A stretch of 64,000 nt of DNA from Octopus sinensis (Eukaryota). The position numbers and the translations under genes were made by a program. Location of the stretch: the NCBI RefSeq assembly GCF_006345805.1, contig NC_043021.1, positions 9,300,001 through 9,364,000 on the forward strand, read 5' to 3'. The notes below the pieces were generated by a model, which was given only the letters and a program-made list of their open reading frames with translations, did no database searches and was not told where the DNA came from. Shown here one piece after another: positions 10,835 to 63,363 of the stretch (position 1 is the first letter of the stretch; each line of letters begins with the position of its first letter).

Positions 10835-11222
10835 TGGCTGTGTGGTAAGTCGCTTGCTTCTCAATCACATGGTTCCAGGTTCAGGCCCACTGCATAGCAC
10901 CTTGAGCAAGTGTCTTCTAGTACAGCCTCAAGCTGACCAAAGGCTTGTGAGTGGATTTGGTAGAAAAAAACTGAAAGAAGCCCGTCATATATATGTATAT
11001 GTATATATATGTGTGTCTGTTTGTGTGTCTGTGTTTGTCCCCTCAACATCGCTTGACAACTGATGCTGGTGTGTTTACATCCCCGTAACTTAGCAGTTTG
11101 GCAAAAGTTACCGATAGAATAAGTACTCGGCTTACAAAGAATAAGTCCTGGGATAGATTTGCTCGACTAAAGACAGTGCTCCAGCATGGCCACAGTCAAA
11201 TGACTGAAACAAGTAAAAGAGT
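10835..11222 (+). mobile_element. SINE family A
   Basis: Head, central (TA/TG)n, tail ccagcatggccacagtcaaatgactgaaacaagtaaaagag. Confidence 0.9.
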
Positions 11223-11895
11223 AAATGCTTGTTTAAATAAACCCATTTCAAGAAAGTATCAAGTGGGCCGCAAGGTAAATGTCTGCTGGCCACATTTGGC
11301 CAGCCCTGAACAAGACCATTAACCCTGACAATGCACCCTAGAGTTAGCTTCTATATTCATCAAACAGTTCAATCTCTCCCTTTCAAGAGGAGTATACTTT
11401 GATCATTGTAAACACAATAGTGTGTTCCATTCACCCTAACCTTTCTAAACTGCCAACTGTCATCCTATTAGACAAATTTCCAATATCTCAAGGGTAATAG
11501 TAATTCTCAATCATCTTGAATCTATTTCTCCAGTGAAAGCTGCCCATTTATGGGCTCTGTTTACCTCTCATATCTTGTATCAATAGTTATCTGTCAGATC
11601 ATGCTGTTGTGACATTTGCTGATAGAAGTCTCTTTATTAAATCTGGTGTGTTCCAGGGTTTGGTTCTATACCCAATATTTTCCCTTCTATACATCAGTTG
11701 TCTACTTGTCATCATCATGTCTAGCTGCAGTCACTTCATTCTTTCCTAACCTTTCTTCTCCAAAAGTCATCCACATGCAACCTAGACATCTCACAACAAA
11801 CCTACACTGACTCCATCACAGAAACTGTGAAAACGTTTTCCTGTGAAGTCATACGAATATTTTCTCCTTCAACAGTAAAAAAAACAACAAAATCT

Positions 11896-12165
11896 GCGCA
11901 GGAGTGGCTGTGTGGTAAGTAGCTTGTTTACCAACCACATGGTTCCGGGTTCAGTCCCACTGTGTGGCACCTTGAGCAAGTGTCTTCTACTATAGCCTCG
12001 GGCTGACCAAAGGCTTGTGAGTGGATTTGGTAGACGGAAACTGAAAGAAGCCCGTTGTATATATGTATGTATTTGTGTCTGTGTTTGTCCCCACAACATC
12101 GCTTGACAACCGATGGTGGTGTGTTTACGTCCCCGTAACTTAGCGGTTCGGCAAAAGTGACCGGA
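11896..12165 (+). mobile_element. SINE family A, 3'-truncated
   Basis: Same head and core. Confidence 0.88.
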
Positions 12166-14739: not shown

Positions 14740-15038
14740 CTCATATAAAGTGTATGTGTGTATGTATGTATGTATAGGGTGGTGTAAGTGGTTTATGTGT
14801 GTGTATGTGGCTATATATATATATATATATATATTTACACACACACACATATATATATATATATTACATACATATATATATATATACATACATATATATA
14901 TATATACACACACACACACACCACACACACACACATATATATATATATATAAGTATAAATAATATATATATGTTTACATAAATAAATATATATAAAAATA
15001 CATAAATAAATAAGTATATATATATATATCTATTTCTT

Positions 15039-15092
<54 letters not shown>

Positions 15093-15181
15093 ATAGTAGG
15101 TAGTAGGATAAATCCCAGCTATGTTTACATAAATAAATATATATAAAAATACATAAATAAATAAGTGTATATATATATATC

Positions 15182-15235
<54 letters not shown>

Positions 15236-15462
15236 ATTATATACACATATAATATGTGTATATAGTAGGTAGTAGGTTAAGTCCCAGCTGTTTCCTCTTG
15301 AAGCACATCTGCTTATCCAATTTATTACAATCCAATATGTATCTCAAAATACATATCAAACTTGAGAAATATGGGAATATTTGTAGAGCTATTGTAAAAC
15401 AAAAACAGGAAATTGGAAAGTTTTTTTGCAAATGAAACGCATGTAATGCTGAATGAATACTA

Positions 15463-15523: not shown

Positions 15524-15684
15524 TGCAGGAGTGGCTGTGTGGTAAGTAGCTTGCTAACCAACCACATGGTTCCGGGTTCAGTCCCACTGCGTGGCACCTT
15601 GGGCAAGTGTCTTCTACTATAGCCTCGGGCCGACCAAAGCCTTGTCAGTAGATTTGGTAGACAGAAACTGAAAGAAGCCCGTCG

Positions 15685-15915: not shown

Positions 15916-16159
15916 TATAAATAATAATAATAATATTATCTCAACTGATACTGCGGAATTCCTGAAGTAGATCCAAAGGAAATATACCCGAACTACGGAT
16001 GACACCATGTAGCCCAAACTGTATCAGTGCTTTATTCGGCACATCAGCACACTAACTGTAGCAATTCAACAATGATATAATTAAATCAAAATATATAGAA
16101 AAAAATTAAATATACAATAAAACATATACCTATAATTAAGTAAAATACACAATAATATA

Positions 16160-16549
16160 GGCACAGGAGTGGCTGTGTGGTAAGTAGCTTGTTTACCAAC
16201 CACATGGTTCCGGGTTCAGTCCCTCTGCGTGGCATCTTGGGCAAGTGTCTTCTGCTATAGCCCCGGGCCGACCAATGCCTTGTGAGTGGATTTGGTAGAC
16301 GGAAACTGAAAGAAGCCTGTCGTATATATATATATATGTATGTGTGTGTTTGTCCCCCTAGCATTGCTTGACAACCGATGATGGTGTGTTTACGTCCCCG
16401 TCACTTAGCGGTTCGGCAAAAGAGACCGATAGAATAAGTACTGGTCTTACAAAGAATAAATCCCGGGGTCGATTTGCTCGACTAAAGGCAGTGCTCCAGC
16501 ATGGCCGCAGTCAAATGACTGAAACAAGTAAAAGAGAAAAGAGTAAGAG
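16160..16549 (+). mobile_element. SINE family A, full length, 33-bp flanking direct repeat
   Basis: tatacctataattaagtaaaatacacaataata at 16125-16157 and 16550-16582. Confidence 0.92.
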
Positions 16550-16917: not shown

Positions 16918-17752
16918 CCGAGCTGGCAGAACCGTTAGCACACCGGGCGAAGTGCTTAGTGGTATTTCGCCCGTCGCTACGTTCTGAGTTCAAATTCCGG
17001 CGAGGTCGACTTTGCCTTTCATCCTTTCGGGGTCGATAAATTAAGTACCAGTTACGCAATGGGGTCGATGTAATCGACTTAATACCTATGTCTGTCCTTG
17101 TTTGTCCCCTCTATGTTTAGCCCCCTGTGAGTAATAAAGAAATAGATTCTGGCCGTGACCATCCTGTCTGTTATTTAGACATTGTGTGCACCATCCGAAC
17201 GTGGTCGATGCCAAGTCAGCCTGACTGGCTCCTCTGCTGGTGGCGTGTAAAAAGCACCATCTGAATGTGATCGATGCCAGGGTCGGCTGACTGGTGCTCC
17301 TGTGCTGCTGGCACGTAAAAAGCACCCACTACACTCTCAGAATGGTTGTCATTAGGAAGGACATCCAGTTGTAGGAACATTGCCAGATCAGATTGGAGCC
17401 TGGTGTAGCCACTGGCTTTCCAGACCTCAGTCAAACTGTCCAACCCATGCCAGCATGGAAAACAGACTTTAAACGATGATGATGGTGATGATGAGTGTAC
17501 CTAGATCTACATTAGGCATTGTTCTGCAGCTGGATATCCTTTATACTCTTTACTCTTTTACTTGTTTCAGTCATTTGACTGCGGCTATGCTGGAGCACTG
17601 CCTTTAGTCGAGCAAATCGACCCCCAGGACTTATTCTTTGGAAGCCCAGTACTTATTTTATCGGTCTCTTTTGCCGAACCACTAAGTGACGGGGACGTAA
17701 ACACACCAGCATCGGTTGTCAAGCAATGCTAGGGGGACAAACACAGACACAA

Positions 17753-17783
<31 letters not shown>

Positions 17784-17950
17784 CATATATACGACAGGCT
17801 TCTTTCAGTTTCTGTCTACCAAATCCACTCACAAGGCATTGGTCAGCCCAGGGCTATAGCAGAAGACACTTGCCCAAGATGCCACGCAGTGGGACTGAAC
17901 CCAGAACCATGTGGTTGGTTAGCAAGCTACTTACCACACAGCCACTCCTG
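16918..17950. mobile_element. Cluster: SINE B (+, 16918-17140), family C (+, 17150-17492), SINE A (-, 17540-17950)
   Basis: Diagnostic motifs of each family. Confidence 0.85.
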
Positions 17951-18514: not shown

Positions 18515-18930
18515 GCACAGGCATGGCTGTGTGGTGAGAAGTTGCTTCCTGGCTACATGATTCTGGGTTCAGTTCCACTGTGGGGCACCTTGGGCAAGTG
18601 TCTTCTCATATAGCCTCAGGCCAACCAAAGCCTTAAGAGTGGATTTGGTAGATGGAAACTGAAAGAAGCTTGTCGTATATATATATATGTGTGTGTGTAT
18701 TTGCATTTGTGTTTTCTCCACCACCACCATCACTGCTTGACAACCAGTGTTAGTTTGTTTATGTCTCCATGACATAGTGGTTTGGTAAAAGAGACTCATG
18801 GAATAAGTACCAGGCTTAACAAAATTAAGTACTGGGGTCGATTCATTCAACTAAAATTTCTTCAGAGTGGTGCCCCAGCATGGCCACAGTCTAATGACTG
18901 AAAGAGATTAAATATAAAAGATAAAAGACA
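18515..18930 (+). mobile_element. SINE family A, diverged
   Basis: Head ggcatggctgtgtggt..., tail ggtgccccagcatggccacagtctaatgactgaaa. Confidence 0.8.
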
Positions 18931-21960: not shown

Positions 21961-22866
21961 AAATACTCACACATACACAAAGATCTGATTCCCTCTGTCT
22001 TTCTTAAAAATCTCTTGAGATTGTCTGCGTACAATAATTAATTGAATCTCTGTGATAAGAACTTCTTAATTACTTCATTAAGGCAATGTTGTGTATACAC
22101 TTTAATTGTACCAAGCCTATGCATTCTAGTCACGTACTCCCCCACTTTGTTTTAAACCAAAGAGTAACACTCTAGTCAATTATTTTGGTTTTATAAATCC
22201 TCCAAGCTTTACTTCAACCATAAAAGTCACTATATTATATTTGAAAACAAAATTCTGCATTTACTTAAAAACAAATCCTCCCCCACAATTCAAAAACGAA
22301 GTATCATTAAATACTATTATTAGTAAATATTAAGAGATTTAATATCCTTAAGAAAATCCATATTATAATTTGTCATGTTCATTTCCCCTTGAAAATCCAG
22401 GACCCTTTTGTCCAATGTAATATCATTATCACTGTTGTCTTCCTGAAAAGGAAGGGAGATAAATGTTTTTTTATGTTCCCTTTGAAATTTGTAAAATCAA
22501 ATTTTCCCTAAGATATATTAGCTACACTTTACTTATGTAGTACTCCTCTTTTTAGGTGTAATTAGTCTTAGACGGGTTAAGTATGGATAATTCAAAATAG
22601 CTCAGAATATTCTAATATAGTAATTTGTTTGTGTGCATTTAGAATTGTGGAGATTGAATTTGAAGTCATTTAATTAAACTGTAAGATAGTTTTTACAAAA
22701 GAAAAGAAGCATCATCGTCATGTTAATTAACACTTAGAATATAACGACATACTTTAGATGCTCGACACTAACAAGGCTGCAGGTCTTAGCTGTAGCATTG
22801 TGTCAGATTTTAGTGAGGCTCTTGTGTTTGGAAAAGTGTGTTTGTCTGTGTAACTAAGTAGGAGAT

Positions 22867-25800
22867 ATGCAGATGGCTGAAGAGAAGAAGGTGTCCGGAA
22901 ACCATGCAAGTTTGGAGAACTTACAGCAAGTACCACTGTCACAGAAAAGTGTTGAGCAGATCATTACATTTCCTTGGAGTCGTGACCATTCGTTGAGCTG
23001 CTACCATGGCTTGGACCAGAATGTCAAACCCGGAGAATACGTCCTTCTCACACTCTTCATGGAGTTCTGTTCAATTACTGAACACAAGATTGAACAAGTC
23101 CTTGCTGAACCACTTAAAAACCATTTTTCTAAATCTCTACAAAGAAATGAGGACCCCCAGTTTGACCAGCTGCTTGCCTCCCTCGGCTGTGTGGCCGAAC
23201 AAGGCCTGCCATCTCTCCTGCATTCCTTTCTTAAATGGTATGAAAAACAGTCACTTGTTGACAACAGTCACCTCCTTGATCGTTACCGTATACGAAATAA
23301 AGGAGAAAAAAACTTCCTGTGCGAGCGCCGTGAACTGGCTGTTGATTATGTTTATTGTTTGGTGCTGATTGAGATCTTACCGAAACTCTCATACCACCCA
23401 GGCCATGATGAACTTGTCACATGCATTATCAACCAGGGGTTCCGGCATTTCAAGTATAAAGATGGTTTACAGGCAAATCCAAATGCTGGCAATATCAAAC
23501 TGATTTCTAGTCTGTATGCAGAGGTGATCGGTGTTCTGGCCCAGTCTCGGTTCCCACCGATTCACAAGACTTTTCTCAATGAGCTGAAAGAACTGAAGCT
23601 CCGTGACCAAACACCATTCACGGCACAAAGTGTTATTAGCCTGTTGATGGGCCTGAAGTTCTTCCGTGTCAAAATGCACCCAATTGAAGATTTTGAAATG
23701 TGTGTCCAGTTCCTGCACGAGTTGGGTCAGTATTTTCTCGAAGTAAAAGACCGGGATATCAAACATGCCTTAGCCATGTTGCTTGTGGAAATCCTACTGC
23801 CTGTTGCTGCCCAAGCGAAAAATGAGGTAAACGTCCCAGTTTTGAAGAATTTTGTCGAGATGCTCTACTCAACCACCATTGATATGACCACGAAAAAGAA
23901 ACACACTCTTCATTTATTTCCTCTGGTCACGTGTCTGTTGTGTGTTAGCCACAAACAATTCTTCCTTAGTAACTGGCCATACTTTCTCACAATGTGTTTG
24001 TCTCAGTTAAAGAACAAAGAAGCAAAGATGTCACGTGTTGCCCTTGAATCTCTCTACCGCTTGCTCTGGGTCTACATGGTGCGGATTAAATGTGAAAGTA
24101 ATACAGCCACCAGGAGTCGACTTCAAAGCATTGTGAACAGTCTCTTTCCAAAAGGCTCAAAGATGGTAACACCACGCGACACACCGCTTAATATTTTTGT
24201 CAAGATCATTCAATTTATTGCTAAAGAAAGACTGGATTTTGCTATGAAAGAAATAATTTTTGACTTACTCTGTGTTGGAAGACCAATCAAATTCTTGACA
24301 CCAGAAAGAATGAGTATTGGTTTGAGAGCCTTCCTAGTTATTGCCGACAGCTTACAGCAGAAGGATGGTGATCCTCCGATGCCTCAGTCTGCAGCAACAT
24401 TACCTTCTGGCAGTACAGTCCGTATCAAGAGAACATTTTTGAACAAAATGCTGAGTGAGGAGACAGCCAAGGACATTGGTCTATCATGCTACTATCCTCA
24501 CATCCTGAAAACCTTTGATTCAATCCTTCGTGCTTTGGATGTGCAAGTAGGTCGTCCATTATTACAGACAAACTCTGAAAACACGGGGAAAGAAGTTGAC
24601 GAACTCATCACCAGTGACCGTAAACCTAAAATCGACTTATTCCGCACATGCATAGCTGCAATTCCCCGCTTGATACCCGAAAACATGTCAAGCCAAGAAC
24701 TTGTCGAACTGCTTACCCGTCTGACAGTACACATCGATGATGAATTAAGAGGTTTAGCATTTCAAGCTTTGCAGAACCTGATGCACGAATCTCAAACTTT
24801 CAAAGAACAGGTCATTCGAGGTTTTGTGCAGTTTATTCAGCGTGATGTCAGCGACACAGCATCTCAGCCACTGGACGGTGTTCTCCGTATGTTAGTGCAG
24901 CTGCTAGTCCAGTGGAAGAGCAACCCTGGTCAGCAGCAGAGCCTGACCTCGGTACCAGGTCAAGGAGCAAATAAACTGGACGGTAGTAATGGTGCTACTG
25001 GTCGTGAATCAGTCGAACTTGTTGTACTTCACGATGTCGAAGGGTTGGCTCTTGTCATGCTGTGTAGCATTCAACTCGTCATCCGCAAATTGGCTCTGCT
25101 TCTACTCAAGGAGGTGCGCAACATCTTTACTAGTTGCCAACATGGTTCATCGACGACTTGCAGCAACTGCACTACATCACAGCAATCTAATCATCATCAA
25201 CACTATAACCACCACAACATAACTCGCCATCACCAAAACCTTCTCCAACATCATCACCATCACCATCACCTCCATCAGCCACAGTTGCAGCAACTAAACA
25301 AGTCAGACGGTAGTAAAACCTGTTTAATTGACCAGATGGAATGTATGTGTCTGCCAGTCATGACTAAAATGCTTGCAATTCTTCCACCAGATGAGAAGGC
25401 GTCTCTGATTGCCTGTTCCAACATTGATCTGAATTGGATAATCGATCGAGCAGCCAGTACCTGGCTGTCTGGTGCCAGCCAGGACAGCCAGGACATGCAC
25501 CAGCTGATGGTCAACTCCTCGTTTAACCAACCGGACCCCTGGATACATCGTCTCGTTGGACTTATTGCATCTGAGGAATCGTTCAAGAAGTGTAGTCATG
25601 CTGTCAACTGTGCGTGGATGATTGTCTATACTCGATTGCAAATGTTGTTTCCATTGGTTGATGCCAGTTCCCAAACCAACGAATATCGGTCGTCAATACT
25701 ACGTTCTGGAAGCAAGAAAGTCACAAATGACTATGATCTCTACCTACGTCTTTGGCAAAACTACGTGATCCTTGCTTGTTGTTTAGCTCAACAAGGTACA

Positions 25801-28800
25801 GTTTTACCATATCATCGGTGTGCTTCTCCGGATCTTGGATTTTCCCCAGAAAGTTTTCCACCATTGTCTTCCGATAAAACAGAGAATAAACAAACAGCTC
25901 AGAGCAGTAACCTCTTCCGTTTGCTTGTACCATTGATAAAGTGTGAAAGTGCCGACATGAGGGATTCCGTTGTTAACGGTTTGGGTTACACCAATCCCAC
26001 CGTTTTTAAAGAACTCCAGGAAGAACTACTCCCGTACTTAAAGGAAGCCAACGATAAGAAAGTCGATAACATCAAACAAAGGCGCAAACGTAACAACCTG
26101 AGGGTTCAACTGACTCGACTGTTCAAACTAATGGCTGAAAACGGGACGTTTGGACTTCACAATTCTGGAGTCATCGATGCTGATAAGAACTGCCTGAACT
26201 CCATGTTCCTTGACTACATCGACGGTGCTCGTGTTTACTTAGAAGGTGAGAATGAAAGAGATTTGCCAAATATTCAAGAAGTGAGATTACATTTTAGTAG
26301 TTTTATTCGTCTGTTGATCCAAAACACTCCGTTGAAACAGAGGAACACTCTACTCTCGAAAGAAACCCGTCACAGTCTATTCCATCTTCTTGCCATCTGG
26401 AGTGGCCACTTCAGTTCATCGTTCGTGCATCTTGAGAGGAAGCTGTCTAAGGAGGAGGTCAGTCCAGAATTGGAGCTGGCCACTGTCAGAGCCATGTCTT
26501 CAGTATTGACCTGCGGTCCAGTTTTTGACTCAAACGGCCTGAATGAAGATGGCTATGTTTATACTTGGCTCGACGCTCTGTGGAATTGTCACGAGACGGA
26601 GATGCAGGAACAGATTCTGAGCTTGGCCAAAGAGACTGTGATTCTACTGTTGGACTTCAACCCAGATGTACAATATTTACTGGACTGGGTCATTGACCAC
26701 TGCTATACTGCTAACATGGAAGTCGCTGACCATTGCTTAAATGCCTTGGCTGCTGTGTTTCAAACTAAGGAGTATTCTTGTGATCTGATTGCCATGTTGA
26801 ATCTAGTCGTGTTGAATGTCGGCTGCACTCGCATTGAAACTCATGACACGGCACTCCAGTTACTGCGACTTCTCGACAGTTACTTCTTCCAAGACAAACC
26901 TGTCTTTGAAGAATCTACTCTAGACGCATCCCAACAACCGAATACTCTCAATGATATTTTGTTGACCGTGAACTATGGTCAGTCTCAAGTAGTCTTGTCT
27001 GACCAGTTGGTCAAATTACATCCAGACATGACCGTGCCGATGTTTTCTGAAATCACCCATCGGTTCCAGACTGCACGTCCAGCATTGCGAGAGGTTCTAC
27101 TCAAATGTCTGTTGCCGTGGTTACACAACATCGAACTTGTTGACCCCTCTCTGCCATCTTCTACTGCTATGTCAAGTTTCTTGACCAGTGTCCAGGACAG
27201 CCAGACCGATAAGGTAACCAAGTCGTACCTGGAAGGTGAAGGCTGGGGGTCTGCTCAGGCCACAGAAATGGTACTAAATAATCTGCTGTATATTACTGTG
27301 AAATTTGGAGATAGTCACCCGAGTGAGATTGAACACCTATGGGCTGCTTTGGTAAAATACTGGGCCAACAATTTAAGGGTAGTCGTACGATATTTAGTTA
27401 TTGTCACCAATATGTCGCCAACAGTGTTACTGCCCTACGCTAAACGTGTTATCAGTTATCTCGGCCGAGCTAAACCAGAGAAACTTGTCGATGAATTAAT
27501 GAACGAATTACAAACAGTGGAAACTTTGAACCAGACCATCGAACGCACCCAGACTCCACCATTCTATCGGTTGTCATCTTTGAAGAAGTCAGCTACAAAC
27601 GCCAACACCACAGACGATGAAAAGCTTGGCCGTACACAGGCTCCGGAGAATTCCCTAGAAAAGGGGGTACTCCACACAAAGCGGCACAGTACGTGCGAAG
27701 AGATCACAACTGAAGGCACCCCCTGTACCGATTCCACTACGTTTCTCTGTAGTATATCAAGCATGTCCAGCTCTTCTTCGGTCAGCAGCAGTCATGACTT
27801 AATGGAAGAGAACTGTGCAAGCCCCACCAATACTCCGGTACCTTACCCGCTTCCTATGCCAGCTTACGGCGGATATTTTGCCCCAATGTCTGAGCTTCTA
27901 CCAGATACGTTTGTTCCTACTGCTGGACTACATCGCAGCTATCTTGGTATAATGTTTCTGTCTGATCTTGTGCTTGATGGCCTCGATATAGACTGGACAC
28001 CTCATCTACCTTTGCTACTGCACATTGTCTTTTTGGGACTTGACCATTCTCGAGCGATTGTCTACGAACACTGTAAGAAAATATTTCTCAACTTGTTACT
28101 CTTCCAAGCTTCAGTTCCTGAGCACCAGTACATTGCACGCCTTTTGATCTCACGAATGCCACGACTGAAGTTGCTGAGCGATAACCGCAAGACTTTTACT
28201 GCAGACAGCCCAGCTGTTGAAGAAGATAATTTATTGTGTAATCAGTTAACGAGCACTACACGAACCACTGCTGACCTCACCAAAGACTCTTCTCAACATG
28301 ACTCAGTGGAAACAACTGTGGACAGTCTGTTGTGCTTTCTGGCCAGTAAAACTGGGAAACCACTTTGGAATTATGAAGATATCACTCCTAAGACTCTTAC
28401 AACTATCAGTTCTTCATCATTGGACTATTTCTTAAAGTTAGTGGTGAGGGTGTTTGAAGAATTGGTACCCTTGGCCCTTGTTGAACAACGATGGTCACAG
28501 ATAGCCCTGCAAATGGCATTGTCCTGCTCTTCCAGACATTATGCCGGCCGTTCCTTCCAGGTCCTACGGGCTCTTCAAGTGCGTCCATCTACACAAATGC
28601 TGTCTGACATTCTGTCGAGACTTGTGGAAACGGCAGCCGAACAAGGTGAAGACATGCAAGGGTACGTAACAGAAATTATGTTAACCCTGATTGCTTCTGT
28701 AGACAACCTTGACCTGGAGTTGAGGCCCACTGACATGATGCGGGAACTATTTTTATCGACACCAAACCTCGCGAAAGAAAGCTCCACTGAAGTTGCTCGT

Positions 28801-31737
28801 GGTTCTGTAGTTAATGCAAACTCTGGCCCTGCACACACACGTAGCACTAGCTACACTGTATCCGTCCTGTCACGCCTGACTGCTTGTGTTGCAGCTGGCA
28901 TGCCACGTGTGCGTTCGCCATCAGAAGTGCACCGGTCATGTTTGGCCAAATCCCACAGTGCTCAGTCTCTGAAGAACTTTGACGAAGCCAGCACTGAAGA
29001 TAAACTAACGATTGTTACTCAGATGTTCTGGATGGCCGTCTCTATGTTGGAATCAGACTACGACTACGAATTTCACCTTGCTATCAAACTTCTGGACAAG
29101 ATTCTGAAACACTTGCAGCCCGAAAGACCTGAATGCCGGGAGAAGCTTGATAAGATCTTGCAACAGATAAAATGGAATAATTTCCCTGGTGTGCAGATTC
29201 TTCTGTTAAAAGGTTGCACTTCACATGCATTAGCAGAGCCAACATGGCTCCTTTTATCTCAATTGACCCTTTGCATCAATGCTCCAGTGATGGACCCCAG
29301 CGGAGCCCTTGGTTTCCCCATTAACGTCATCGCCTTACTGCCTTATTTAATACACCACTACGAGAACCCAAGCTCAGAATGTCGTGAGGCTGCTGATCGA
29401 ATTAGTCAGATGTGTGGTCAGCAGTCTGAGAAACTTCACAATCTTGCAACTGTAATGTCTCTTTATAGCCGAGGGACTTTCAACAAGGACAGTTCGCAGT
29501 GGACCAAATGTGTAGTGAAATACTTGCTCGACGTGTATGCGTGCACCAGTCTGAGCATGATTACATTCCTTGTTGAAGTTTTGGAACGAGGACCAATTAA
29601 TTATCAACCAGACATTCTCCAGATTCTTCACTGCATTGTCCATTACGTTGATTTCAACACAACATGTAAAAAGGTTTTGAACCAGCAACTGTTCTGCCCT
29701 GTGTCACGCCACACCAAAGGGATCCACTGGAAGGAAGCCTTAAAGATCCTCAAGCTCGCAGTCACTCGATCATCTACCCTTGCTGCTGCCTTCCCAAGTG
29801 GCGGTGATGCAGGAGGTCCACCTGGAAACCGTTCGTCCTTTGTGGCAGATACCGGCATCTTCCGTAAGAAGGAGTTACCAGGACTGACGCTAGACTTCAC
29901 AGTAGACTTGTCCAATCGAGCGTTGATTGGTCACAAGTATCTGGGTATTGATCTGTACCCGAAAGAAGACAACAAGAATGTCAGCCTTCTGTCCGTTAGT
30001 CGGAAACATTCTGGTAACCAAGATTACGAGTCATCCTGGAAGAAGCCAATGATGTCACAGACGCGTACACGGGAACGATTGATCAGCCTGCTGAACTATT
30101 TCGGACAGCGCATTGGGCTGCCCAAGAGCCCTTCGGTGATATTCAGCCAGTCCAGTGACCAACAACACAGTGTAACATCCAGTGGTGAAGAAACATCTAT
30201 TCCAGAAACCCCATCAAACGATGCTCTGTTGAGCGATACTAACAGTAGTGACCTTATGATGACCTTCAAAAGGTTTGATTTTCTTGACAACGAACTGGAG
30301 AAAGATGAACAAAACGACGACTATTTCTCATTGGGCGATCGGTGCCAGTCGTTTAATCTTCACAGCTCCGAGATTTCCTCAAAGACCACATTTGGAAGCT
30401 CCCCTGAATTGAAACTACAGGACAGTATAGAAGACCTGAAGGGTATAATGTCAAGCGATATTAACTGTTTACTTGAAGTGTCAACGTCCGATGAAGAATC
30501 GCAAACCCCTGGAGCCGATGAGGATGGAATGCCTCGTGACCTTCCATCCAGTAATTCATCAGCCATGCTACAAAACGATACATTGATTGAACGGGATACA
30601 TCTAGCCCTGTCCTAGTGGCCACCTCGTCCAACAGTTCTCCCAGTGAAATAGATCTTATGGTGCTCAGTTCCAGCACATCCCGTGCACTAAGTCTTGCAA
30701 GTCTTGGTGCCATCTATTTCACTATACCTCCTGATGAAGCATGGCAAACTCATCTGCACCAAGTTCTCACAGATTCCTCAGTATCGTTGACCAGTGCCAC
30801 TTGCCTCATCTTCCCTCGTCTTTATAACGAGCATAAGAAATGCATAGCTAACCTGACGCAGGAAGCGTGCTCATACATAGGCGAACACGACAACTTGCAA
30901 GAACTCACCACCAAATTCATGCATATCCTTGACACGCTGTTTTCCCAGATGGAATGTCCGTATGTGTTTGTCCAACCAGAGTCTCTGTTGGAGAACAGTA
31001 TTATTGACCGACATAAGTTCTGTGTCCTGGAAATTCAGGAGTGTTTAGAAATGCTAAGCATGCGACTCACTCAAGCCGAACAGTGTCTCGAGACAATGAA
31101 GTCCATGGCATTTCTCGAGCCTCTAAATGAAGGTGCAGCCTCGGCCGATGCGAGGAATTCCAGTATTGATGACCAGAAGGGGGAGATGTGTCGACAGCTC
31201 TACAAACTGCTTTTCCAGCTGGTGTTACTCTTCGAAAGTTTCATTAAGGTCGTCGATATCTTCCAGAACCTGACTTTGACCGGCCAAGCTTTAGACATGT
31301 CCAGCCAACTGGCAACGATAAAGCAGGAGCTTGCTGCCAGCCTGTCGGAGCTTCAGACCGGTCACACGTCACCATTGTACTTTGATACGCAAATCACACC
31401 AAAGCAGGAGGCCATTGCATATCTGCTGGAGTACCTGCAAGGAAAGCAACATCTTAGTACTCTGCAGCTCTTGCGGATGTTCCGATACCAGTGGCCATCA
31501 GACGTCTTTGGAACAACCGAAGATGACGACATCATAGCTTTACTAAACATTTATTGCAGCTGCGTTGCCCAGACGACAGGCATATTTGTGCTTATACATC
31601 CAGAACCGGACTTTGGCCAAGTGTATAGCTTACTGATGGAAGTAAACAGTCTTTTGTCTTCCAGATGGCCTCATTTAGTATGTCACATTCACAGAAATGA
31701 AATTAGTATTAAACCATCAGATTCTAGTACATTCTAG
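22867..31737 (+). CDS. FRY: Protein furry homolog (FRY/Tao3/Mor2 family), 2956 aa, coding region in one exon
   Basis: Uninterrupted ORF with recognisable Furry motifs throughout: KPGEYVL..LF.EF, KSLQRNEDPQFDQLL, KDRDIKHALA, KNEVNVPVLKNFVEMLY, RLLWVYMVRIKCESNTAT.SRL.SIVNSLFPKGS, RERMSIGLRAFLVIADSLQQKDGDPPMP-like, GEGWGS.QATEMVLNNLLYIT, SRHYAGRSFQVLRAL, RTRERLISLL. An in-frame TAA at 22855-22857 precedes the ATG. Confidence 0.97.
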   Translation: MQMAEEKKVSGNHASLENLQQVPLSQKSVEQIITFPWSRDHSLSCYHGLDQNVKPGEYVLLTLFMEFCSITEHKIEQVLAEPLKNHFSKSLQRNEDPQFDQLLASLGCVAEQGLPSLLHSFLKWYEKQSLVDNSHLLDRYRIRNKGEKNFLCERRELAVDYVYCLVLIEILPKLSYHPGHDELVTCIINQGFRHFKYKDGLQANPNAGNIKLISSLYAEVIGVLAQSRFPPIHKTFLNELKELKLRDQTPFTAQSVISLLMGLKFFRVKMHPIEDFEMCVQFLHELGQYFLEVKDRDIKHALAMLLVEILLPVAAQAKNEVNVPVLKNFVEMLYSTTIDMTTKKKHTLHLFPLVTCLLCVSHKQFFLSNWPYFLTMCLSQLKNKEAKMSRVALESLYRLLWVYMVRIKCESNTATRSRLQSIVNSLFPKGSKMVTPRDTPLNIFVKIIQFIAKERLDFAMKEIIFDLLCVGRPIKFLTPERMSIGLRAFLVIADSLQQKDGDPPMPQSAATLPSGSTVRIKRTFLNKMLSEETAKDIGLSCYYPHILKTFDSILRALDVQVGRPLLQTNSENTGKEVDELITSDRKPKIDLFRTCIAAIPRLIPENMSSQELVELLTRLTVHIDDELRGLAFQALQNLMHESQTFKEQVIRGFVQFIQRDVSDTASQPLDGVLRMLVQLLVQWKSNPGQQQSLTSVPGQGANKLDGSNGATGRESVELVVLHDVEGLALVMLCSIQLVIRKLALLLLKEVRNIFTSCQHGSSTTCSNCTTSQQSNHHQHYNHHNITRHHQNLLQHHHHHHHLHQPQLQQLNKSDGSKTCLIDQMECMCLPVMTKMLAILPPDEKASLIACSNIDLNWIIDRAASTWLSGASQDSQDMHQLMVNSSFNQPDPWIHRLVGLIASEESFKKCSHAVNCAWMIVYTRLQMLFPLVDASSQTNEYRSSILRSGSKKVTNDYDLYLRLWQNYVILACCLAQQGTVLPYHRCASPDLGFSPESFPPLSSDKTENKQTAQSSNLFRLLVPLIKCESADMRDSVVNGLGYTNPTVFKELQEELLPYLKEANDKKVDNIKQRRKRNNLRVQLTRLFKLMAENGTFGLHNSGVIDADKNCLNSMFLDYIDGARVYLEGENERDLPNIQEVRLHFSSFIRLLIQNTPLKQRNTLLSKETRHSLFHLLAIWSGHFSSSFVHLERKLSKEEVSPELELATVRAMSSVLTCGPVFDSNGLNEDGYVYTWLDALWNCHETEMQEQILSLAKETVILLLDFNPDVQYLLDWVIDHCYTANMEVADHCLNALAAVFQTKEYSCDLIAMLNLVVLNVGCTRIETHDTALQLLRLLDSYFFQDKPVFEESTLDASQQPNTLNDILLTVNYGQSQVVLSDQLVKLHPDMTVPMFSEITHRFQTARPALREVLLKCLLPWLHNIELVDPSLPSSTAMSSFLTSVQDSQTDKVTKSYLEGEGWGSAQATEMVLNNLLYITVKFGDSHPSEIEHLWAALVKYWANNLRVVVRYLVIVTNMSPTVLLPYAKRVISYLGRAKPEKLVDELMNELQTVETLNQTIERTQTPPFYRLSSLKKSATNANTTDDEKLGRTQAPENSLEKGVLHTKRHSTCEEITTEGTPCTDSTTFLCSISSMSSSSSVSSSHDLMEENCASPTNTPVPYPLPMPAYGGYFAPMSELLPDTFVPTAGLHRSYLGIMFLSDLVLDGLDIDWTPHLPLLLHIVFLGLDHSRAIVYEHCKKIFLNLLLFQASVPEHQYIARLLISRMPRLKLLSDNRKTFTADSPAVEEDNLLCNQLTSTTRTTADLTKDSSQHDSVETTVDSLLCFLASKTGKPLWNYEDITPKTLTTISSSSLDYFLKLVVRVFEELVPLALVEQRWSQIALQMALSCSSRHYAGRSFQVLRALQVRPSTQMLSDILSRLVETAAEQGEDMQGYVTEIMLTLIASVDNLDLELRPTDMMRELFLSTPNLAKESSTEVARGSVVNANSGPAHTRSTSYTVSVLSRLTACVAAGMPRVRSPSEVHRSCLAKSHSAQSLKNFDEASTEDKLTIVTQMFWMAVSMLESDYDYEFHLAIKLLDKILKHLQPERPECREKLDKILQQIKWNNFPGVQILLLKGCTSHALAEPTWLLLSQLTLCINAPVMDPSGALGFPINVIALLPYLIHHYENPSSECREAADRISQMCGQQSEKLHNLATVMSLYSRGTFNKDSSQWTKCVVKYLLDVYACTSLSMITFLVEVLERGPINYQPDILQILHCIVHYVDFNTTCKKVLNQQLFCPVSRHTKGIHWKEALKILKLAVTRSSTLAAAFPSGGDAGGPPGNRSSFVADTGIFRKKELPGLTLDFTVDLSNRALIGHKYLGIDLYPKEDNKNVSLLSVSRKHSGNQDYESSWKKPMMSQTRTRERLISLLNYFGQRIGLPKSPSVIFSQSSDQQHSVTSSGEETSIPETPSNDALLSDTNSSDLMMTFKRFDFLDNELEKDEQNDDYFSLGDRCQSFNLHSSEISSKTTFGSSPELKLQDSIEDLKGIMSSDINCLLEVSTSDEESQTPGADEDGMPRDLPSSNSSAMLQNDTLIERDTSSPVLVATSSNSSPSEIDLMVLSSSTSRALSLASLGAIYFTIPPDEAWQTHLHQVLTDSSVSLTSATCLIFPRLYNEHKKCIANLTQEACSYIGEHDNLQELTTKFMHILDTLFSQMECPYVFVQPESLLENSIIDRHKFCVLEIQECLEMLSMRLTQAEQCLETMKSMAFLEPLNEGAASADARNSSIDDQKGEMCRQLYKLLFQLVLLFESFIKVVDIFQNLTLTGQALDMSSQLATIKQELAASLSELQTGHTSPLYFDTQITPKQEAIAYLLEYLQGKQHLSTLQLLRMFRYQWPSDVFGTTEDDDIIALLNIYCSCVAQTTGIFVLIHPEPDFGQVYSLLMEVNSLLSSRWPHLVCHIHRNEISIKPSDSSTF

Positions 31738-31930: not shown

Positions 31931-32744
31931 AGATTTAACATGTGAAAAGAATTTTAAATAATGTAAAATAATTAAAAATCTAAATACATAATAAATTAAA
32001 AAAAAAAGAAGTGAAACTGTTGTGAATCTCAATGAGATGTGGTTTGGGATTGAAACCTGAACCTTTGAGACCAAACTGAACTGAATATCTTTGTACCTTT
32101 TTGACTCTGAACAACTGCTGCTTAATGCATTTATTGAAGATATAAAAGTTTACCAAAATGATTTATCATCACCGTGTTTTCAACAGTTTTATGTGTTTAT
32201 ACTTTTTCATCAACATCATCGTCAATGTCATCTTCATTATCACCATCATTCATTGATTTACATCCATTTTCCATATTGGCATGGCTTGGACAGTTATGCC
32301 TGCTCTCCTGAATGGGTCAAGGGACTACCTTTCATTCATGGGTTTTATTTTTGGTTAGGTTTCTTCAGCTCGGTATATATGCTTCCTAGTGCCGTCCACT
32401 TTACACAGGAGTACTGGGTGCATTTCATTTTGTGGTACTAACACCAGAAAAATTATTGTCTCTTCAATAAGCCTAAAGCTCCTTGCAACCCTACACTTAT
32501 ACAGAGTAGACTAGGCACATTTTTTTGTGGCATCAGCATGAGAAAGACTAGGAGTGAGAGAATGATGGCTAGCAAGAGGTAAGAGTGAGTGATGACTGTC
32601 AATGTCAAATGGCAAGTTGAGTGTGTAAGTAGAGTTTGTGAGGCATGTTCATGTCTAATGAGATCCCTTAAGTATTTTTCTCAAGATGGTGAGAGAGTTA
32701 ATGGGATATGGACCAGGCTCAAGGTTTAGTGGCTAGCGATCTAC

Positions 32745-33120
32745 ACATACTGGGCGCCACTGCATAGTGCCAAGGACTCCAAATTTGCCATCAAGATGTA
32801 GGACAAGATACTGTGATAGCCTGGGCTTCAGAGGCCCACAGCTCTTCAATATCCTCCCGAAGAACCTGAGAGACCTGCATGGGGTGGATGCAGATGTCTT
32901 TAAAATAAAACTGGATCTCTTCCTGTCAGGTGTCCCAGATGAACCAACTTCACCGCAGGAGGTGCAGATGAGGGCAGCTGCATCGAACTCTCTCATGCAC
33001 CAAATGGCAATTGCTAAAAAGCATTCGTGAAGTAAAATCATGTAGCAACACCAAATGATGGCGGTGCCCCAGCATGGCCACAGCTCGTGAGCTGAAACTA
33101 GATAAATTAAAAAAAAAAAT
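32745..33120 (+). mobile_element. CR1-group (CR1/L2/Crack/Daphne-like) LINE 3' end with 3' UTR and A tail
   Basis: GPQLFNILPKNLRDLHGVDADVFKIKLDLFLSGVPDEP...RAAASNSL-stop, then a UTR stem-loop and poly(A). Confidence 0.8.
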
Positions 33121-33384
33121 ACTTAAACACAAACACATAAATACACACACATACACATGAATAAATTGACTGCTATCTTTAGTTCCATCAGCAGCAAAAT
33201 AGAGTGAACGGTCAAGAGGTGAGCAGTGGGAGCATGGGCGATAAAACAAGGCTGATAGAGACTGGAGAAGATAATAGGGAGACGAGATAGGTGTGTTACA
33301 GAGACGAGAAGCTGCCAAGGACCCCAAAAACAGATACACATGTACTCATATATATGTAAATCAGAAGTTATGAACCAATATTCT

Positions 33385-33572
33385 CTCTTTTACTTGTTTC
33401 AGTCATTTGACTGCGGCCATGCTGGAGCACCACCTTTACTCGAGCAAATCGACCCCAGGACTTATTCTTTGTAAGCTTAGTACTTATTACATCGGTCTCT
33501 TTTGCCGAAAAGCTAAGTTACAAGGACATAAACACACCACCAATGGTTGTCAAGCGATGCTGGGGGGGACAA

Positions 33573-33606
<34 letters not shown>

Positions 33607-33772
33607 GACGGGCTTCTTTCAGTTTCTGTCTACCAAATGCACTCACAAGGCTTTGGTCGGCCCGAGGCTATAGTAGAAGACACTTGCCCGAGGTGCCACG
33701 CAGTTCAGTGGGACTGAATCCGGAACCATGTGGTTGGTAAGCAAGCTACTTACCACACAGCCACTCCTTTGC
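33385..33772 (-). mobile_element. SINE family A
   Basis: Reverse complement of the A consensus. Confidence 0.88.
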
Positions 33773-33899
33773 CTATAAATATAATACATGCCTTTTATCT
33801 TCTACATGTTTCAGTCTGTACAGACTGTAGCCATACTGAGGCACTGCCTTCAGAAATTTTAGTTGAAGTAACCAACCTCAATACATATATTCTCTTTAA

Positions 33900-37615: not shown

Positions 37616-37937
37616 CTGGAAAAATGAATTTCTTTAAATGCTGAAAGTTACTTACATCTGTGTATTTGTTTTTAGTAAATATTTCATTGACTGATATAGT
37701 TACAAATTTATTAGGTCCTTTTGTTTAATTAAGGATGAGAATATCATTTTAGAATAAGCATATGGTTTGTAGTGTTCCTTAAGGGGACAGCCTATCAGCA
37801 GGCTGACCTGAAACCCAGCTGTATTAAAACCTGTAGTGCCTATAAAGTCTGACTGGTCCTTTATTAAAATTTTTGTTATCTGTATTAAAACCGGTCTGTG
37901 GTACCTAAAATAAACCCAAACTGTGGTACCTATAATA

Positions 37938-38985
37938 AAATCAAACTGTGGTATGTATATTAAAACCTGGCTGCTGTAGAACTGAATTGTGGTACCTATT
38001 ATAATACACTTGGTACTTGTGTAAAATCAACTGTGGTATGTATATTAAAACCTGGCTGCTGTAGAACTGAATTGTGGTACCTATTATAATACACTTGGTA
38101 CTTGTATAAAATCAAACTGTGGTATGTATATTAAAACCTGGCTGCTGTAGAACTGAATTGTGGTACCTATTATAATACACTTGGTACTTGTATAAAATCA
38201 AACTGTGGTATGTATATTAAAACCTGGCTGCTGTAGAACTGAATTGTGGTACCTATTATAATACACTTGGTACTTGTATAAAATCAACTGTGGTATGTAT
38301 ATTAAAACCTGGCTGCTGTAGAACTGAATTGTGGTACCTATTATAATACACTTGGTACTTGTATAAAATCAAACTGTGGTATGTATATTAAAACCTGGCT
38401 GCTGTAGAACTGAATTGTGGTACCTATTATAATACCTTGGTACTTGTATAAAATCAAACTGTGGTATGTATATTAAAACCTGGCTGCTGTAGAACTGAAT
38501 TGTGGTACCTATTATAATACACTTGGTACTTGTATAAAATCAAACTGTGGTATGTATATTAAAACCTGGCTGCTGTAGAACTGAATTGTGGTACCTATTA
38601 TAATACACTTGGTACTTGTATAAAATCTAACTGTGGTATGTATATTAAAACCTGGCTGCTGTAGAACTGAATTGTGGTACCTATTATAATACACTTGGTA
38701 CTTGTATAAAATCAAACTGTGGTATGTATATTAAAACCTGGCTGCTGTAGAACTGAATTGTGGTACCTATTATAATACACTTGGTACTTGTATAAAATCT
38801 AACTGTGGTATGTATATTAAAACCTGGCTGCTGTAGAACTGAATTGTGGTACCTATTATAATACACTTGGTACTTGTATAAAATCTAACTGTGGTATGTA
38901 TATTAAAACCTGGCTGCTGTAGAACTGAATTGTGGTACCTATTATAATACACTTGGTACTTGTGTAAAATCTAACAGTGGTACCT
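37938..38985. repeat. 86-bp minisatellite, 12 near-identical units
   Basis: Unit aaatcaaactgtggtatgtatattaaaacctggctgctgtagaactgaattgtggtacctattataatacacttggtacttgtata. Confidence 0.95.
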
Positions 38986-40796: not shown

Positions 40797-40943
40797 GGTG
40801 GTTGGCATTAGGAAGGGCATTCAGCTGTAGAAACTCTGCCAGATCAAGATTGGAGCCTGGTGCAGCCATCTGGGTCGCCAGTCCTCAGTCAAATCGTCCA
40901 ACCCATGCTAGCAAGGAAAGCAGACATTAAACAATGATGATGA

Positions 40944-40980
<37 letters not shown>

Positions 40981-41517
40981 GTTCACTCTATAAGGTGGTT
41001 GGTTTTAGGAAGGGCATCCAGCTGTAGAAACTCTGCCAGATCAGACTGGAGCCTGGTGCAGCCATCTGGGTCGCCAGTCCTCAGTCAAATCGTCCAACCC
41101 ATGCTAGCAAGGAAAGCAGACATTAAACAATGATGATGATGATATATATATATATATATATATATAGATATATATATTTATAGTTCACTCTATAAGGTGG
41201 TTGGTTTTAGGAAGGGCATCCAACTGTAGAAACTCTGCCAGATCAGATTGGAGCCTGGTGCAGCCATCTGGTTAGCCAGTCCTCAGTCAAATCGTCCAAC
41301 CCATGCTAGCATGGAAAGCAGCCGTTAAACGATGATGATATATAGATATATATATATTTATAGTTCACTCTATAAGGTGGCTGGTTTTAGGAAGGGCATC
41401 CAGCTGTAAAGACCCTGTCAAAACAGACAGTGAAGCCTGGTGCAGTCTTCTGCTTAGCCAGCCCCTGTCAAACCATCCAACCCATGCCAACCAGACTTTA
41501 AATGATGATGATGATGA
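40797..41517 (+). repeat. Tandem array of about 190-bp family C 3' fragments (3 similar units plus 1 diverged)
   Basis: Repeating aggaagggcat.cagctgtagaaactctgccagatc...gatgatgat(at)n...tttatagttcactctataa. Confidence 0.88.
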
Positions 41518-44113: not shown

Positions 44114-44474
44114 TTTATATATTGTACTAGCACTACAACCCGGCGTTGCCTGGTCTAGTGCTAGTGCTTGTTGTTCATTGCCGGGTCGCAGTAAAAATTT
44201 CTCACTAAATGAAGAGCTAAGTTTCTTATCACATTTCTGCCCGGGCTACTTACCACACAGCCATTGTGGAATTTCTTTTGACACTTACATTCTGAGTTCA
44301 AATTCCACTGGGGTTGATTTTGCCACTTATCCTTTTGGGATTGTACCAGTTCAATACTGGGGTTTATATAATCGGTTAGAGTCCCTTCTCCAGATTTCAG
44401 GTCTTGTGTATATAGTAGAGAGAATTATTATTAATTCAACTCAGAAATTTAAATAAGAGAATTCCTTTATTTAT

Positions 44475-44679
44475 TTACTCTTTTACTTGTTTCAGTCTTT
44501 TGACTGCGGCCATGCTGGAGCACCGCCTTTAGTCGAACAAATCGACCCTGGGACTTATTCTTTTGTAAGCCCAGTACTTATTCTATCGGTCTCTTTTGCC
44601 AAACCGCTGAGTGACGGGGACGTAAACACACCAGCATCGGTTGTCAACCAATGCTAGGGGGACAAACACAGACACACAA

Positions 44680-44732
<53 letters not shown>

Positions 44733-44895
44733 TACGACAGGCTTCTTTCAGTTTCCGTCTACCAAATCCACTCACAAGGCATTGGTCGGCCCGGGGCTAT
44801 AGCAGAAGACACTTTCCCAAGGTGCCACGCAGTGGGACTGAACCTGGAACCATGTGGTTGGTTAGCAAGCTACTTACCACACAGCCACTCCTGTG
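44475..44895 (-). mobile_element. SINE family A, full length
   Basis: Reverse complement of the A consensus. Confidence 0.9.
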
Positions 44896-50199: not shown

Positions 50200-50613
50200 C
50201 ACTAAAAAGATCCAAGTATAGATAGTGGCCTTTTCCTGGAAACGTACAAGTTACTTGCCAAATATGACATAGTTACACCAATCAACATCACCATGAATTT
50301 CCACAGATAGGACATATGTCCCATCTCTCTTTGCAGAGCCAGAGTAAGTTTGTCAACCAGCTTGGTGATCATATTAGAGGAGCCCTCTTACAAAAAGATT
50401 GAAGAGATCTAGTATTTTGCTCATGTTTGATAGCAAAATTAAACATTATAGGCATAGGAGTGGCTGTGTGGTAAGTAGCTTGCTAACGAACCACATGGTT
50501 CCGGGTTCAGTCCCACTGCGTGGCACCTTGGGCAAGTGTCTTCTACTATAGCCTCGGGCCGACTAAAGCCTTGTGAGTGGATTTGATAGATGGAAACTGA
50601 AAGAAGCCCGTTG

Positions 50614-50648
<35 letters not shown>

Positions 50649-51524
50649 CTGTGTTTGTCCCAACATCGCTTGACAACCGATGCTGGTGTGTTTATGTCCC
50701 CGTAACTTAGCGGTTCGGCAAAAGAGACCGATAGAATAAGTACTAGGCTTACAAAGAATAAAGTCCTGAGGTCGATTTGCTCGACTAAAGGCGGTGCTCC
50801 AGCATGGCCTCAGTCAAACGACTGAAACAAGTAAAAGAGTATTCAGTTAGTATGAGAACTGTGCAGTGTGCTATTAAAAAATATATGAGCACTCTGGCTA
50901 TTTCTCACTGACTAAATGTCCCAAGTGATTTGGTATGTTCACACCGAAGATAGAGAAGTCAGTTTGGTAAGAGTCTTTCATTGACTTGCATTTAGTTATA
51001 TGGAAAACCAGCTGATGACATTGGAAAGCAGATATGTGACCAACTGCAAGTAAATGGCCTTAAGCTGAAGCACCGCTGAAACTGGACAGAAATGTATTTT
51101 GGATAAGAACCCAAGCAGTGTTTGTGCCATGTAACAATCATATGCTTGGCCTTGCCGCCGTGTATGCAGCCGGTGTTGGAGCAGTCTGTGACTTCGGCAC
51201 TATATACACATTCTTCTCACAGGAAAGACAATCTCTAGGAAATATGTCCTAATTCACAATAAGTAAATGCATGGGACAAGGTGGAATTCAAAGCATGAAA
51301 CTGTACACGTATTTGCTGTGTAGATGAGGAAATACCAGAAGTTTTAGGATGTGTTGAGAGATGAGCCAGAAGTGGCTGTGTGGTAAGTAGCTTGTTTACA
51401 AACCACATGGTTCCGGGTTCAGTCCCACTGCGTAGCACCTTGGCAAGTGTCTTCTACTATAGCCTCGGGCCGACTAAAGCCTTGTGAGTGGATTTGATAG
51501 ATGGAAACTGAAAGAAGCCCGTTG

Positions 51525-51559
<35 letters not shown>

Positions 51560-52960
51560 CTGTGTTTGTCCCAACATCGCTTGACAACCGATGCTGGTGT
51601 GTTTATGTCCCCGTAACTTAGCGGTTCGGCAAAAGAGACCGATAGAATAAGTACTAGGCTTACAAAGAATAAAGTCCTGAGGTCGATTTGCTCGACTAAA
51701 GGCGGTGCTCCAGCATGGCCTCAGTCAAACGACTGAAACAAGTAAAAGAGTATTCAGTTAGTATGAGAACTGTGCAGTGTGCTATTAAAAAATATATGAG
51801 CACTCTGGCTATTTCTCACTGACTAAATGTCCCAAGTGATTTGGTATGTTCACACCGAAGATAGAGAAGTCAGTTTGGTAAGAGTCTTTCATTGACTTGC
51901 ATTTAGTTATATGGAAAACCAGCTGATGACATTGGAAAGCAGATATGTGACCAACTGCAAGTAAATGGCCTTAAGCTGAAGCACCGCTGAAACTGGACAG
52001 AAATGTATTTTGGATAAGAACCCAAGCAGTGTTTGTGCCATGTAACAATCATATGCTTGGCCTTGCCGCCGTGTATGCAGCCGGTGTTGGAGCAGTCTGT
52101 GACTTCGGCACTATATACACATTCTTCTCACAGGAAAGACAATCTCTAGGAAATATGTCCTAATTCACAATAAGTAAATGCATGGGACAAGGTGGAATTC
52201 AAAGCATGAAACTGTACACGTATTTGCTGTGTAGATGAGGAAATACCAGAAGTTTTAGGATGTGTTGAGAGATGAGCCAGAAGTGGCTGTGTGGTAAGTA
52301 GCTTGTTTACAAACCACATGGTTCCGGGTTCAGTCCCACTGCGTAGCACCTTGGGCAAGTGTCTTCTACTTGGGCCGACCAAAGCCTTGTGAGTGGATTT
52401 GGTAGACGGAAACTGAAAGAAGCCCGTCGTATATATGTGTATATATATATATATATATGCATGTGTGTGTTTGTGTGTGTGTTTGTCCCCCTAGCATTGC
52501 TTGACAACCGATGCTGGTGTGTTTATGTCCCCGATACTTAGCGGTTCGGCAAAAGAGACCGATAGAATAAGTACTGGGCTTACAAAAGAATAAGTCCTGG
52601 GGTCGAGTTGCTCGATTAAAGGCGGTGCTCCGGCATGGCCGCAGTCAAATGACTGAAACAAGTAAAAGAGTAAGAAACCTATGAAACCAAGAGTGATGCA
52701 GAAAATTTACGTTTGTTTCCTTATTGCATTTTTGGAGCCCAGAATTAACCAAAGTGGATGATGTTCAGATGTACCTGCAGCAAGAAGGACTTGCACTTGA
52801 TCAATGTGCGTATAAGTTAAAAGCATTCGATTTGTTTTGCAAAGAAAAATGAGAATGTCTAGTGCGAAAAGCAACTGAAAAAGATCTGAAGATGGGCAAA
52901 ATGTTTTGTGCTTTTGGAAGAGGGAAGGGTTAGAAGATACTTGGTGAGCAGGGTTGTCAT
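50200..52960 (+). mobile_element. Decayed hAT-superfamily transposase, split by SINE A insertions and a tandem duplication
   Basis: Broken frames in the correct order: LFLETYKLLAKYD, QSQSKFVNQLGDHIR, ESFID, GKPADDIGKQICDQL, AVFVPCNNHMLGLAAVYAA, GTRWNSKHETV, FW..LTKVDDVQMYLQQEGLALDQC. Confidence 0.7.
50452..52672 (+). repeat. 911-bp tandem duplication bounded by three SINE A copies
   Basis: Unique text tattcagttagtatgag... starts at 50840 and 51751; duplicated ORFs at 51235 and 52146 are 911 bp apart. Confidence 0.93.
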
Positions 52961-53590: not shown

Positions 53591-53798
53591 AACATTTTCA
53601 GGTTTCTGGAGGGATAATCAATCTCACCAACGGCCACAGCAGTTAATAGTTTGAGACACCTGACACAGGTTAAGAGATCGTTGTAAATATCAAAGATGGG
53701 TTATTTACAATAACAACAACAACAACAACCAAAGAGAAATGTTAAAAATAACGTCAGCCGTTTTGTAAAATGGTTGCGAGAAGTGTGTTTCCAGGGTT

Positions 53799-59869: not shown

Positions 59870-59900
<31 letters not shown>

Positions 59901-63112: not shown

Positions 63113-63145
<33 letters not shown>

Positions 63146-63328: not shown

Positions 63329-63363
<35 letters not shown>

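Follow-up and report, generated by a model that had tools for sequence, protein, structure and literature searches.

As a rule, retrocopies are short and non-functional and have lost their 5' end. Functional retrogenes are a well-known kind of gene, and two of the closest described systems are AmphiSYCP1 of amphioxus, which has a ~3.2-kb coding exon and whose parent has been lost (Garstang & Ferrier 2018, PMC5803294), and human TAF1L, a retroposed, primate-specific copy of TAF1 with 1826 amino acids (aa), a 6.2-kb transcript and ~95% similarity to its parent (PMC11423858). In the 'orphan' retrogenes the retrocopy is the conserved, indispensable gene (Ciomborowska et al. 2013, PMC3548309). Here we describe an intronless gene of the Furry family (Furry/Fry/FRYL/Mor2/Pag1/Tao3), hereafter copy A, at positions 22867-31737 of a 64,000-nucleotide stretch of the Octopus sinensis genome (NCBI RefSeq assembly GCF_006345805.1, contig NC_043021.1, positions 9,300,001 to 9,364,000 of the forward strand; the window). 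With a probability of about 0.8, we consider copy A to be a functional, ancient retrogene of coleoid cephalopods that was derived from a spliced furry mRNA and whose intron-rich parent, copy B, persists.

On this reading copy A resembles AmphiSYCP1 as a single coding exon from a large multi-exon gene, ancient and functional, at a locus unrelated to that of its parent, but its exon measures 8.9-9.05 kb, the loss amounts to ~60 introns and the parent is kept in every coleoid examined. It shares with TAF1L the form of an unusually long intronless retrocopy encoding an intact large protein; however, TAF1L is young, whereas copy A (2956-3016 aa) is ~60% identical to its parent and common to octopods and cuttlefish. 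Compared with these two yardsticks it is 1.6-2.8 times longer, far older and coexists with its parent. As with the orphan retrogenes, it is the more conserved paralog, in its case in octopods, although it is not orphaned, since parent B is intact and spliced. Within the Furry family it has the same full-length four-domain architecture, but lacks introns and carries insertions of its own (aa 757-814) and 15 fixed substitutions. A full-text literature search yielded no publication dealing with a furry retrogene or with retrogenes in cephalopods; for several of the species considered here, public annotations already list the gene itself as 'protein furry'. As a retrogene, copy A is new, and exceptional in size and age.

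An intronless furry gene common to octopods and cuttlefish

The listing of open reading frames (ORFs) gives one uninterrupted ORF at 22867-31737 (+ strand), with an ATG start and 2956 codons followed by a stop; no other ORF in the 20-35 kb interval of the window exceeds 150 aa. At about 38-46% GC, a chance origin of 2956 open codons is impossible. An in-frame TAA is located at 22855-22857 (+), 9 nt 5' of the ATG, so that the ORF is not extendable in the 5' direction and the N-terminus is fixed in the exon. The start is further supported by the blastn alignment to the Argonauta hians locus, which opens at the ATGs of both genes (window position 22867 and position 10001 of contig L001), and the Octopus and Argonauta proteins align from residue 1. 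The Sepia ORF starts ~15 codons 5' of the first residue aligned by tblastn.

Pfam identified all four Furry domains in order along the ~3000-aa protein, giving a full-length architecture, all on the + strand: MOR2-PAG1_N (PF14222; 23323-24915, aa 153-683; E 4.4e-156, 521 bits), MOR2-PAG1_mid (PF14228; best of five stretches at 28228-28590, aa 1788-1908; E 5e-39, 134 bits), MOR2-PAG1_C (PF14225; 29020-29775, aa 2052-2303; E 5e-65, 220 bits) and the animal-type C-terminal region Fry_C (PF19421; 30733-31650, aa 2623-2928; E 6e-81, 273 bits), the bit scores of the first three being well over the Pfam gathering cut-offs. The description of this ORF in the first-pass annotation as an 8.9-kb intronless and intact furry gene is borne out by its 2956 codons and these four domains.

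The protein is 55-63% identical to other molluscan furry proteins, and copy A has fixed substitutions at 15 columns where every other sequence, copy B included, shows the same residue, a count biased by the low divergence inside the A clade. Alignment blocks unique to copy A mark low-complexity insertions rich in cysteine, histidine and glutamine at 25135-25308 (+; aa 757-814); they include HHHHHHH and differ in length between Octopus and Argonauta, and it is in this region that the blastn alignment of the two loci breaks (window 25183-25208 against L001 12357-12510). The insertions were considered as remnants of retained introns and rejected as such, being of low complexity and having no clean fit to the ancestral intron sites. 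Drosophila Fry, together with Mob, binds and activates the Tricornered (NDR) kinase and is needed for its function in polarised growth and dendrite patterning (PMC2868802). Judging from homology, copy A presumably serves cell polarity and neurite morphogenesis as a large scaffold and activator of NDR/Tricornered-type kinases.

The annotations of O. sinensis (GCA_006345805.1, CM016883.1) and O. vulgaris (GCA_951406725.2, OX597838.1; contig L009) both give the exact copy A protein as one range of 8871 nt, the proteins of the two species being identical; the O. sinensis locus and window 12867-41737 match at 100% identity. The O. bimaculoides protein (XP_014783664.1) shares 99% identity with the window protein. 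Uninterrupted orthologous ORFs were found in Argonauta hians (L001 10001-19051, 3016 aa) and in Sepia (Acanthosepion) pharaonis (L004 37904-46933, 3009 aa), and a single tblastn high-scoring segment pair spans aa 17-2974 of the annotated Sepia protein. Identity to the window protein in the homology search was 94% for Argonauta (P0002) and 83% for the Sepia cluster (90% cluster P0003, including S. pharaonis CAE1283514, P0121), while the tree alignment gave 95.3% between Octopus and Argonauta and ~86% for Sepia. Coding introns number zero in all four genomes (O. sinensis, O. vulgaris, Argonauta and Sepia), with no intermediate state.

Public annotations of O. bimaculoides, Argonauta hians and S. 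pharaonis include copy A, and the O. sinensis and O. vulgaris assemblies have a gene call for it. The Argonauta and Sepia models either fall short of the ORF or carry spurious extra exons at their ends. The Argonauta model is 'partial' at 2871 aa against the 3016-aa ORF, and in S. pharaonis the first 15 and last 37 codons are swapped for tiny distant exons, which inflates the gene model to 43 kb (L004 10001-53145). The cuttlefish ortholog is also present on transcript-sized Logan contigs of 9.2-13 kb. Full-length homology searches returned no named Nautilus or squid furry, and a search with the N-terminal domain listed short proteins only; the best unnamed N-domain match in the quest for a Nautilus sequence (P0167) was rejected, since it is a fragment from a heterodont bivalve.

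Between O. sinensis and O. vulgaris the copy A coding sequences (CDSs) differ at 44 positions, all of which are synonymous (44/44; 0 nonsynonymous), and two Sepia species gave a ratio of nonsynonymous to synonymous divergence (dN/dS) of 0.03-0.05. Between Octopus and Argonauta dN was 0.032 and dS was saturated; as synonymous sites are saturated between genera (NG86 undefined), dN/dS values come from the close pairs only. Copy A is under purifying selection, and by this substitution pattern it clearly behaves as a functional gene under strong constraint and not as a processed pseudogene.

The intron-rich paralog and the molluscan intron map

The homology search also recovered copy B in O. sinensis (isoforms X1-X8, P0020 among them), O. 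vulgaris, O. bimaculoides (fragments), Argonauta (P0028) and Sepia (cluster P0006/P0152), at 53-58% identity to copy A in that search and 60-63% in the tree alignment. The Argonauta gene is divided into 63 exon blocks across 67.5 kb, with at least 62 coding introns, and the Sepia gene (P0152) has 30 introns in its first 1486 aa, the first half of the gene, over 67 kb. A transcript-sized Logan contig of copy B (L007) is split into 30 segments when aligned to the Sepia genome, which indicates that copy B is truly spliced, and the O. sinensis gene has eight isoforms. The furry gene of the oyster Saccostrea echinata, 38.9 kb in length, has at least 60 coding introns.

Intron positions were mapped for Argonauta B, Sepia B and one oyster. 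In the multiple alignment 49 of the 61 resolved introns of Argonauta B coincide with oyster introns in both column and phase, and five more are located within 5 columns of one. Because the positions in oyster and copy B coincide, the furry gene of the molluscan ancestor had about 60 introns. Copy A reads through all 49 of the shared sites within its single exon. Copy B has thus kept the ancestral introns, and copy A has none of them.

A neighbour-joining tree of 24 taxa (2694 columns, Kimura distances, 200 bootstraps) recovered the A clade, the B clade and a cephalopod clade of A plus B, each with a bootstrap of 100, and placed A+B as sister to gastropods and bivalves; a tree from the N-terminal domain only had the same topology. 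Both copies are found in octopods and in a cuttlefish, and the duplication is therefore older than the split between Octopodiformes and Decapodiformes, which published clocks place at ~250-300 million years. The distance between A and B (0.50-0.58) is close to that from either copy to other molluscs (0.55-0.65), pointing to an early event in cephalopod history or to fast evolution straight after it. Taken together, the sequences place the origin of copy A before the coleoid radiation, at an absolute age that would follow from those clocks.

The two paralogs have evolved at different rates. Between Argonauta and Sepia, dN was 0.112 for copy A against 0.272 for copy B, and between Octopus and Argonauta protein identity was 95.3% for copy A against 88.8% for copy B. 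In octopods, with abalone as outgroup, a Tajima test counted 228 unique changes in A against 364 in B (p = 2e-8). The acceleration of copy B thus appears to be mainly an octopod feature, with copy A as the slower paralog there.

Origin of the intronless copy

Under the explanation that we favour, a fully spliced ~9-kb mRNA of the ancestral intron-rich furry gene would have been reverse-transcribed and inserted at a new locus, in the interval between the separation of cephalopods from the gastropod and bivalve lineages and the divergence of octopods from decapodiforms. The ancestral gene, with roughly 60 coding introns, would survive as copy B, and copy A would then have gained expression and stayed intact for hundreds of millions of years. 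An RNA-mediated origin accounts by far most economically for the loss of ~60 conserved introns at once. The separate locations of the two copies fit insertion at a new site: in O. sinensis copy A is located on CM016883.1 (28.9 Mb) and copy B on another chromosome record of 59.36 Mb, and in Argonauta and Sepia they are on different contigs. The proposal in the first-pass annotation that a full-length mRNA had been retroposed and kept under selection agrees with the intron-rich paralog in the same genomes, with the 44 synonymous differences out of 44 and with the dN/dS of 0.03-0.05. Of its two options for the parental gene, the retrocopy standing beside it was correct and the retrocopy replacing it was not, as copy B persists. 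The multi-exon paralog that it proposed to look for is copy B, with at least 62 introns in Argonauta, and the tree and intron map that it called for gave A and B as sister clades (bootstrap 100) and 49 of 61 introns shared with oyster; an alternative that it had raised, that molluscan furry genes are equally intron-poor, is contradicted by the oyster gene with its at least 60 introns.

The 3' end of copy A offers suggestive evidence. The first-pass annotation had pointed to an A-rich stretch near 31996-32007 as a possible tail relic; an A10 run is indeed present at 31998-32007 (+). It lies 261 nt past the stop codon and 27 nt 3' of an ATTAAA motif, and may be either a poly(A) relic or a present-day polyadenylation region. 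Downstream of the other copy A genes there is an A11 run at +291 in Argonauta and an A13 run at +208 after the stop in Sepia, and the Sepia Logan contig L003 ends exactly at the latter. Starting from a randomly chosen non-coding point, one would meet 10 or more consecutive A residues within 300 nt with a probability of 0.046, 0.076 and 0.146 at the three loci, respectively, and the joint chance for the two genera in which the predicted A-run was tested is ~0.01, in regions that are A/T-rich and otherwise unalignable. The runs weakly suggest either that the 3' end is conserved or that a tail relic is present, the latter being suggestive at best.

Several observations weigh against this account or limit it. 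Classical hallmarks of insertion were not demonstrated; no search for a target-site duplication was made, and survival of one at such an age is not expected. The 3' flanks are unalignable between genera past the stop codon, and no conservation of the A locus was seen with 10-kb flanks, comparison of the CDS-masked window with the Argonauta and Sepia loci (blastn, tblastx) having given dispersed repeats and low-score noise. That copy B occupies the ancestral molluscan locus remains a premise. The tree is distance-based only, and strict shared-derived characters uniting A and B are few (three substitutions and two small indels, against 0-1 for alternative groupings), these counts being biased by unequal divergence inside A and B and not forming the main evidence. 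In the cuttlefish pair the Tajima test was non-significant (A 255 against B 295), and copy A is not significantly slower in decapodiforms. Transcription of copy A, which the account presupposes, was not directly observed in Octopus, and the colinearity of the cuttlefish contig L003 with the genome makes a DNA and an RNA source indistinguishable.

The same intron pattern would result if furry had been duplicated at the DNA level (segmentally or with a chromosome) in an early cephalopod and one duplicate had then been converted in place by a full-length complementary DNA (cDNA) through homologous recombination, with no insertion of the retroposition type. Such a course fits the absence of demonstrable poly(A) and target-site hallmarks and would have provided a working promoter from the outset, but in each of three species the two copies occupy separate records or contigs, and no paralogous neighbours were seen in the short flanks examined. 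cDNA-mediated intron loss usually takes a few adjacent 3' introns, and we know of no documented route in animals to a complete one-step conversion over ~9 kb and 60 introns, which also counts against it. We regard it as unlikely, although it is the strongest of the competitors. Had one DNA-level duplicate instead lost all ~60 introns independently and step by step, only the missing insertion hallmarks would agree, and nothing specific argues for such a course; 49 of 61 positions have remained unchanged between oyster and copy B over the history of the phylum, and copy A is intron-free in all four genomes, no intermediate state being seen. As intron positions have been stable since before the divergence of bivalves and cephalopods, the independent loss of every one is implausible, and we judge this course very improbable.

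An intronless structure on its own is also compatible with a recent retrocopy confined to Octopus, or with an assembly artefact from cDNA contamination. Against both stand the intronless orthologs in Argonauta (~95% aa identity) and Sepia (~86%) with their saturated synonymous sites, the identity of merely 60-63% between A and B, and the same gene structure in two independent Octopus assemblies with dispersed genomic repeats around it. These findings refute both. The recency implied in the first-pass annotation does not hold, the intronless copy being common to octopods and cuttlefish and only ~60-63% identical to B, and its own caveat that the assembly might have taken in cDNA is answered by the recurrence of the ORF, amid genomic repeats, in assemblies made independently for O. 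sinensis, O. vulgaris, Argonauta and Sepia. Retroposition of a spliced furry mRNA in an ancestor of the coleoids remains the explanation that we prefer.

Genomic surroundings and significance of copy A

Approximately 4.5 kb past the furry stop, and as the only annotated neighbour within 10 kb, the window contains a multi-exon gene for a 260-aa Cir_N protein (PF10197) from ~36202 to beyond 41737 (+), a span of more than 5.5 kb. Two tandem arrays are located inside it, an 86-bp unit repeated 12 times at 37935-38982 and a 202-bp unit repeated 3.6 times at 40797-41487. Pfam gave no match for the ten longest other ORFs of the window. Between the two genes, at ~32790-32990 (+), a translation made by eye resembles the C-terminal tail of ORF2 of a long interspersed nuclear element (LINE), which may be a fragment of a young retrotransposon just 3' of furry.

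Dispersed repeats are abundant. A family of ~110 nt resembling a short interspersed nuclear element (SINE) has at least 11 copies in the window as detected by blastn (11945-12055, 15572-15684, 16210-16322, 17790-17888, 18565-18675, 33604-33702, 44733-44831, 50501-50611, 51413-51522, 52324-52429 and 58295-58403). Copies in the Argonauta locus (L001 1296-1405, 4007-4119 and 22397-22494) match them at 80-87% identity; because of these matches the family is considered common to octopod genera. Much of the non-coding window is occupied by a second family of ~400 nt, with copies 85-92% identical (44463-44893, 50456-50841, 51367-51752, 52278-52673, 16156-16545, 17544-17950, 33381-33777 and 10835-11225). 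Tandem and microsatellite arrays at 53086-53594, 59495-59932, 63100-63548 and 14812-15264, comprising units of 23-212 bp at 53 kb, a 20-bp unit repeated 21 times at 59.5 kb, and AC/TA-rich tracts, account for most of the long spurious ORFs outside furry.

If copy A arose as proposed, a complete 9-kb copy of a ~62-exon gene stretches the known range of functional retrogenes in both size and age, and full-length reverse transcription of very long mRNAs would have occurred in the germ line of early cephalopods. A stronger form of the proposal is tentative, and we would sooner doubt it than adopt it: that copy A is among the largest functional retrogenes of animals (a 9-kb exon, ~60 introns removed), predates the split of nautiloids and coleoids, and is now the principal and most constrained Furry of coleoids, with parent B freed to evolve faster, strongly so in octopods. 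The evolutionary rates suggest that copy A may have taken over the ancestral role, and if that stronger form is true, a retrogene takeover has been caught with both partners alive. Coleoids hold two Furry scaffolds, one in a compact single exon without alternative splicing and the other in a 67-kb gene with many isoforms and ~62 introns. Dendrite form and cell polarity depend in other animals on Furry-NDR signalling, and how the work may be divided between copies A and B is a question for cephalopod neurobiology.

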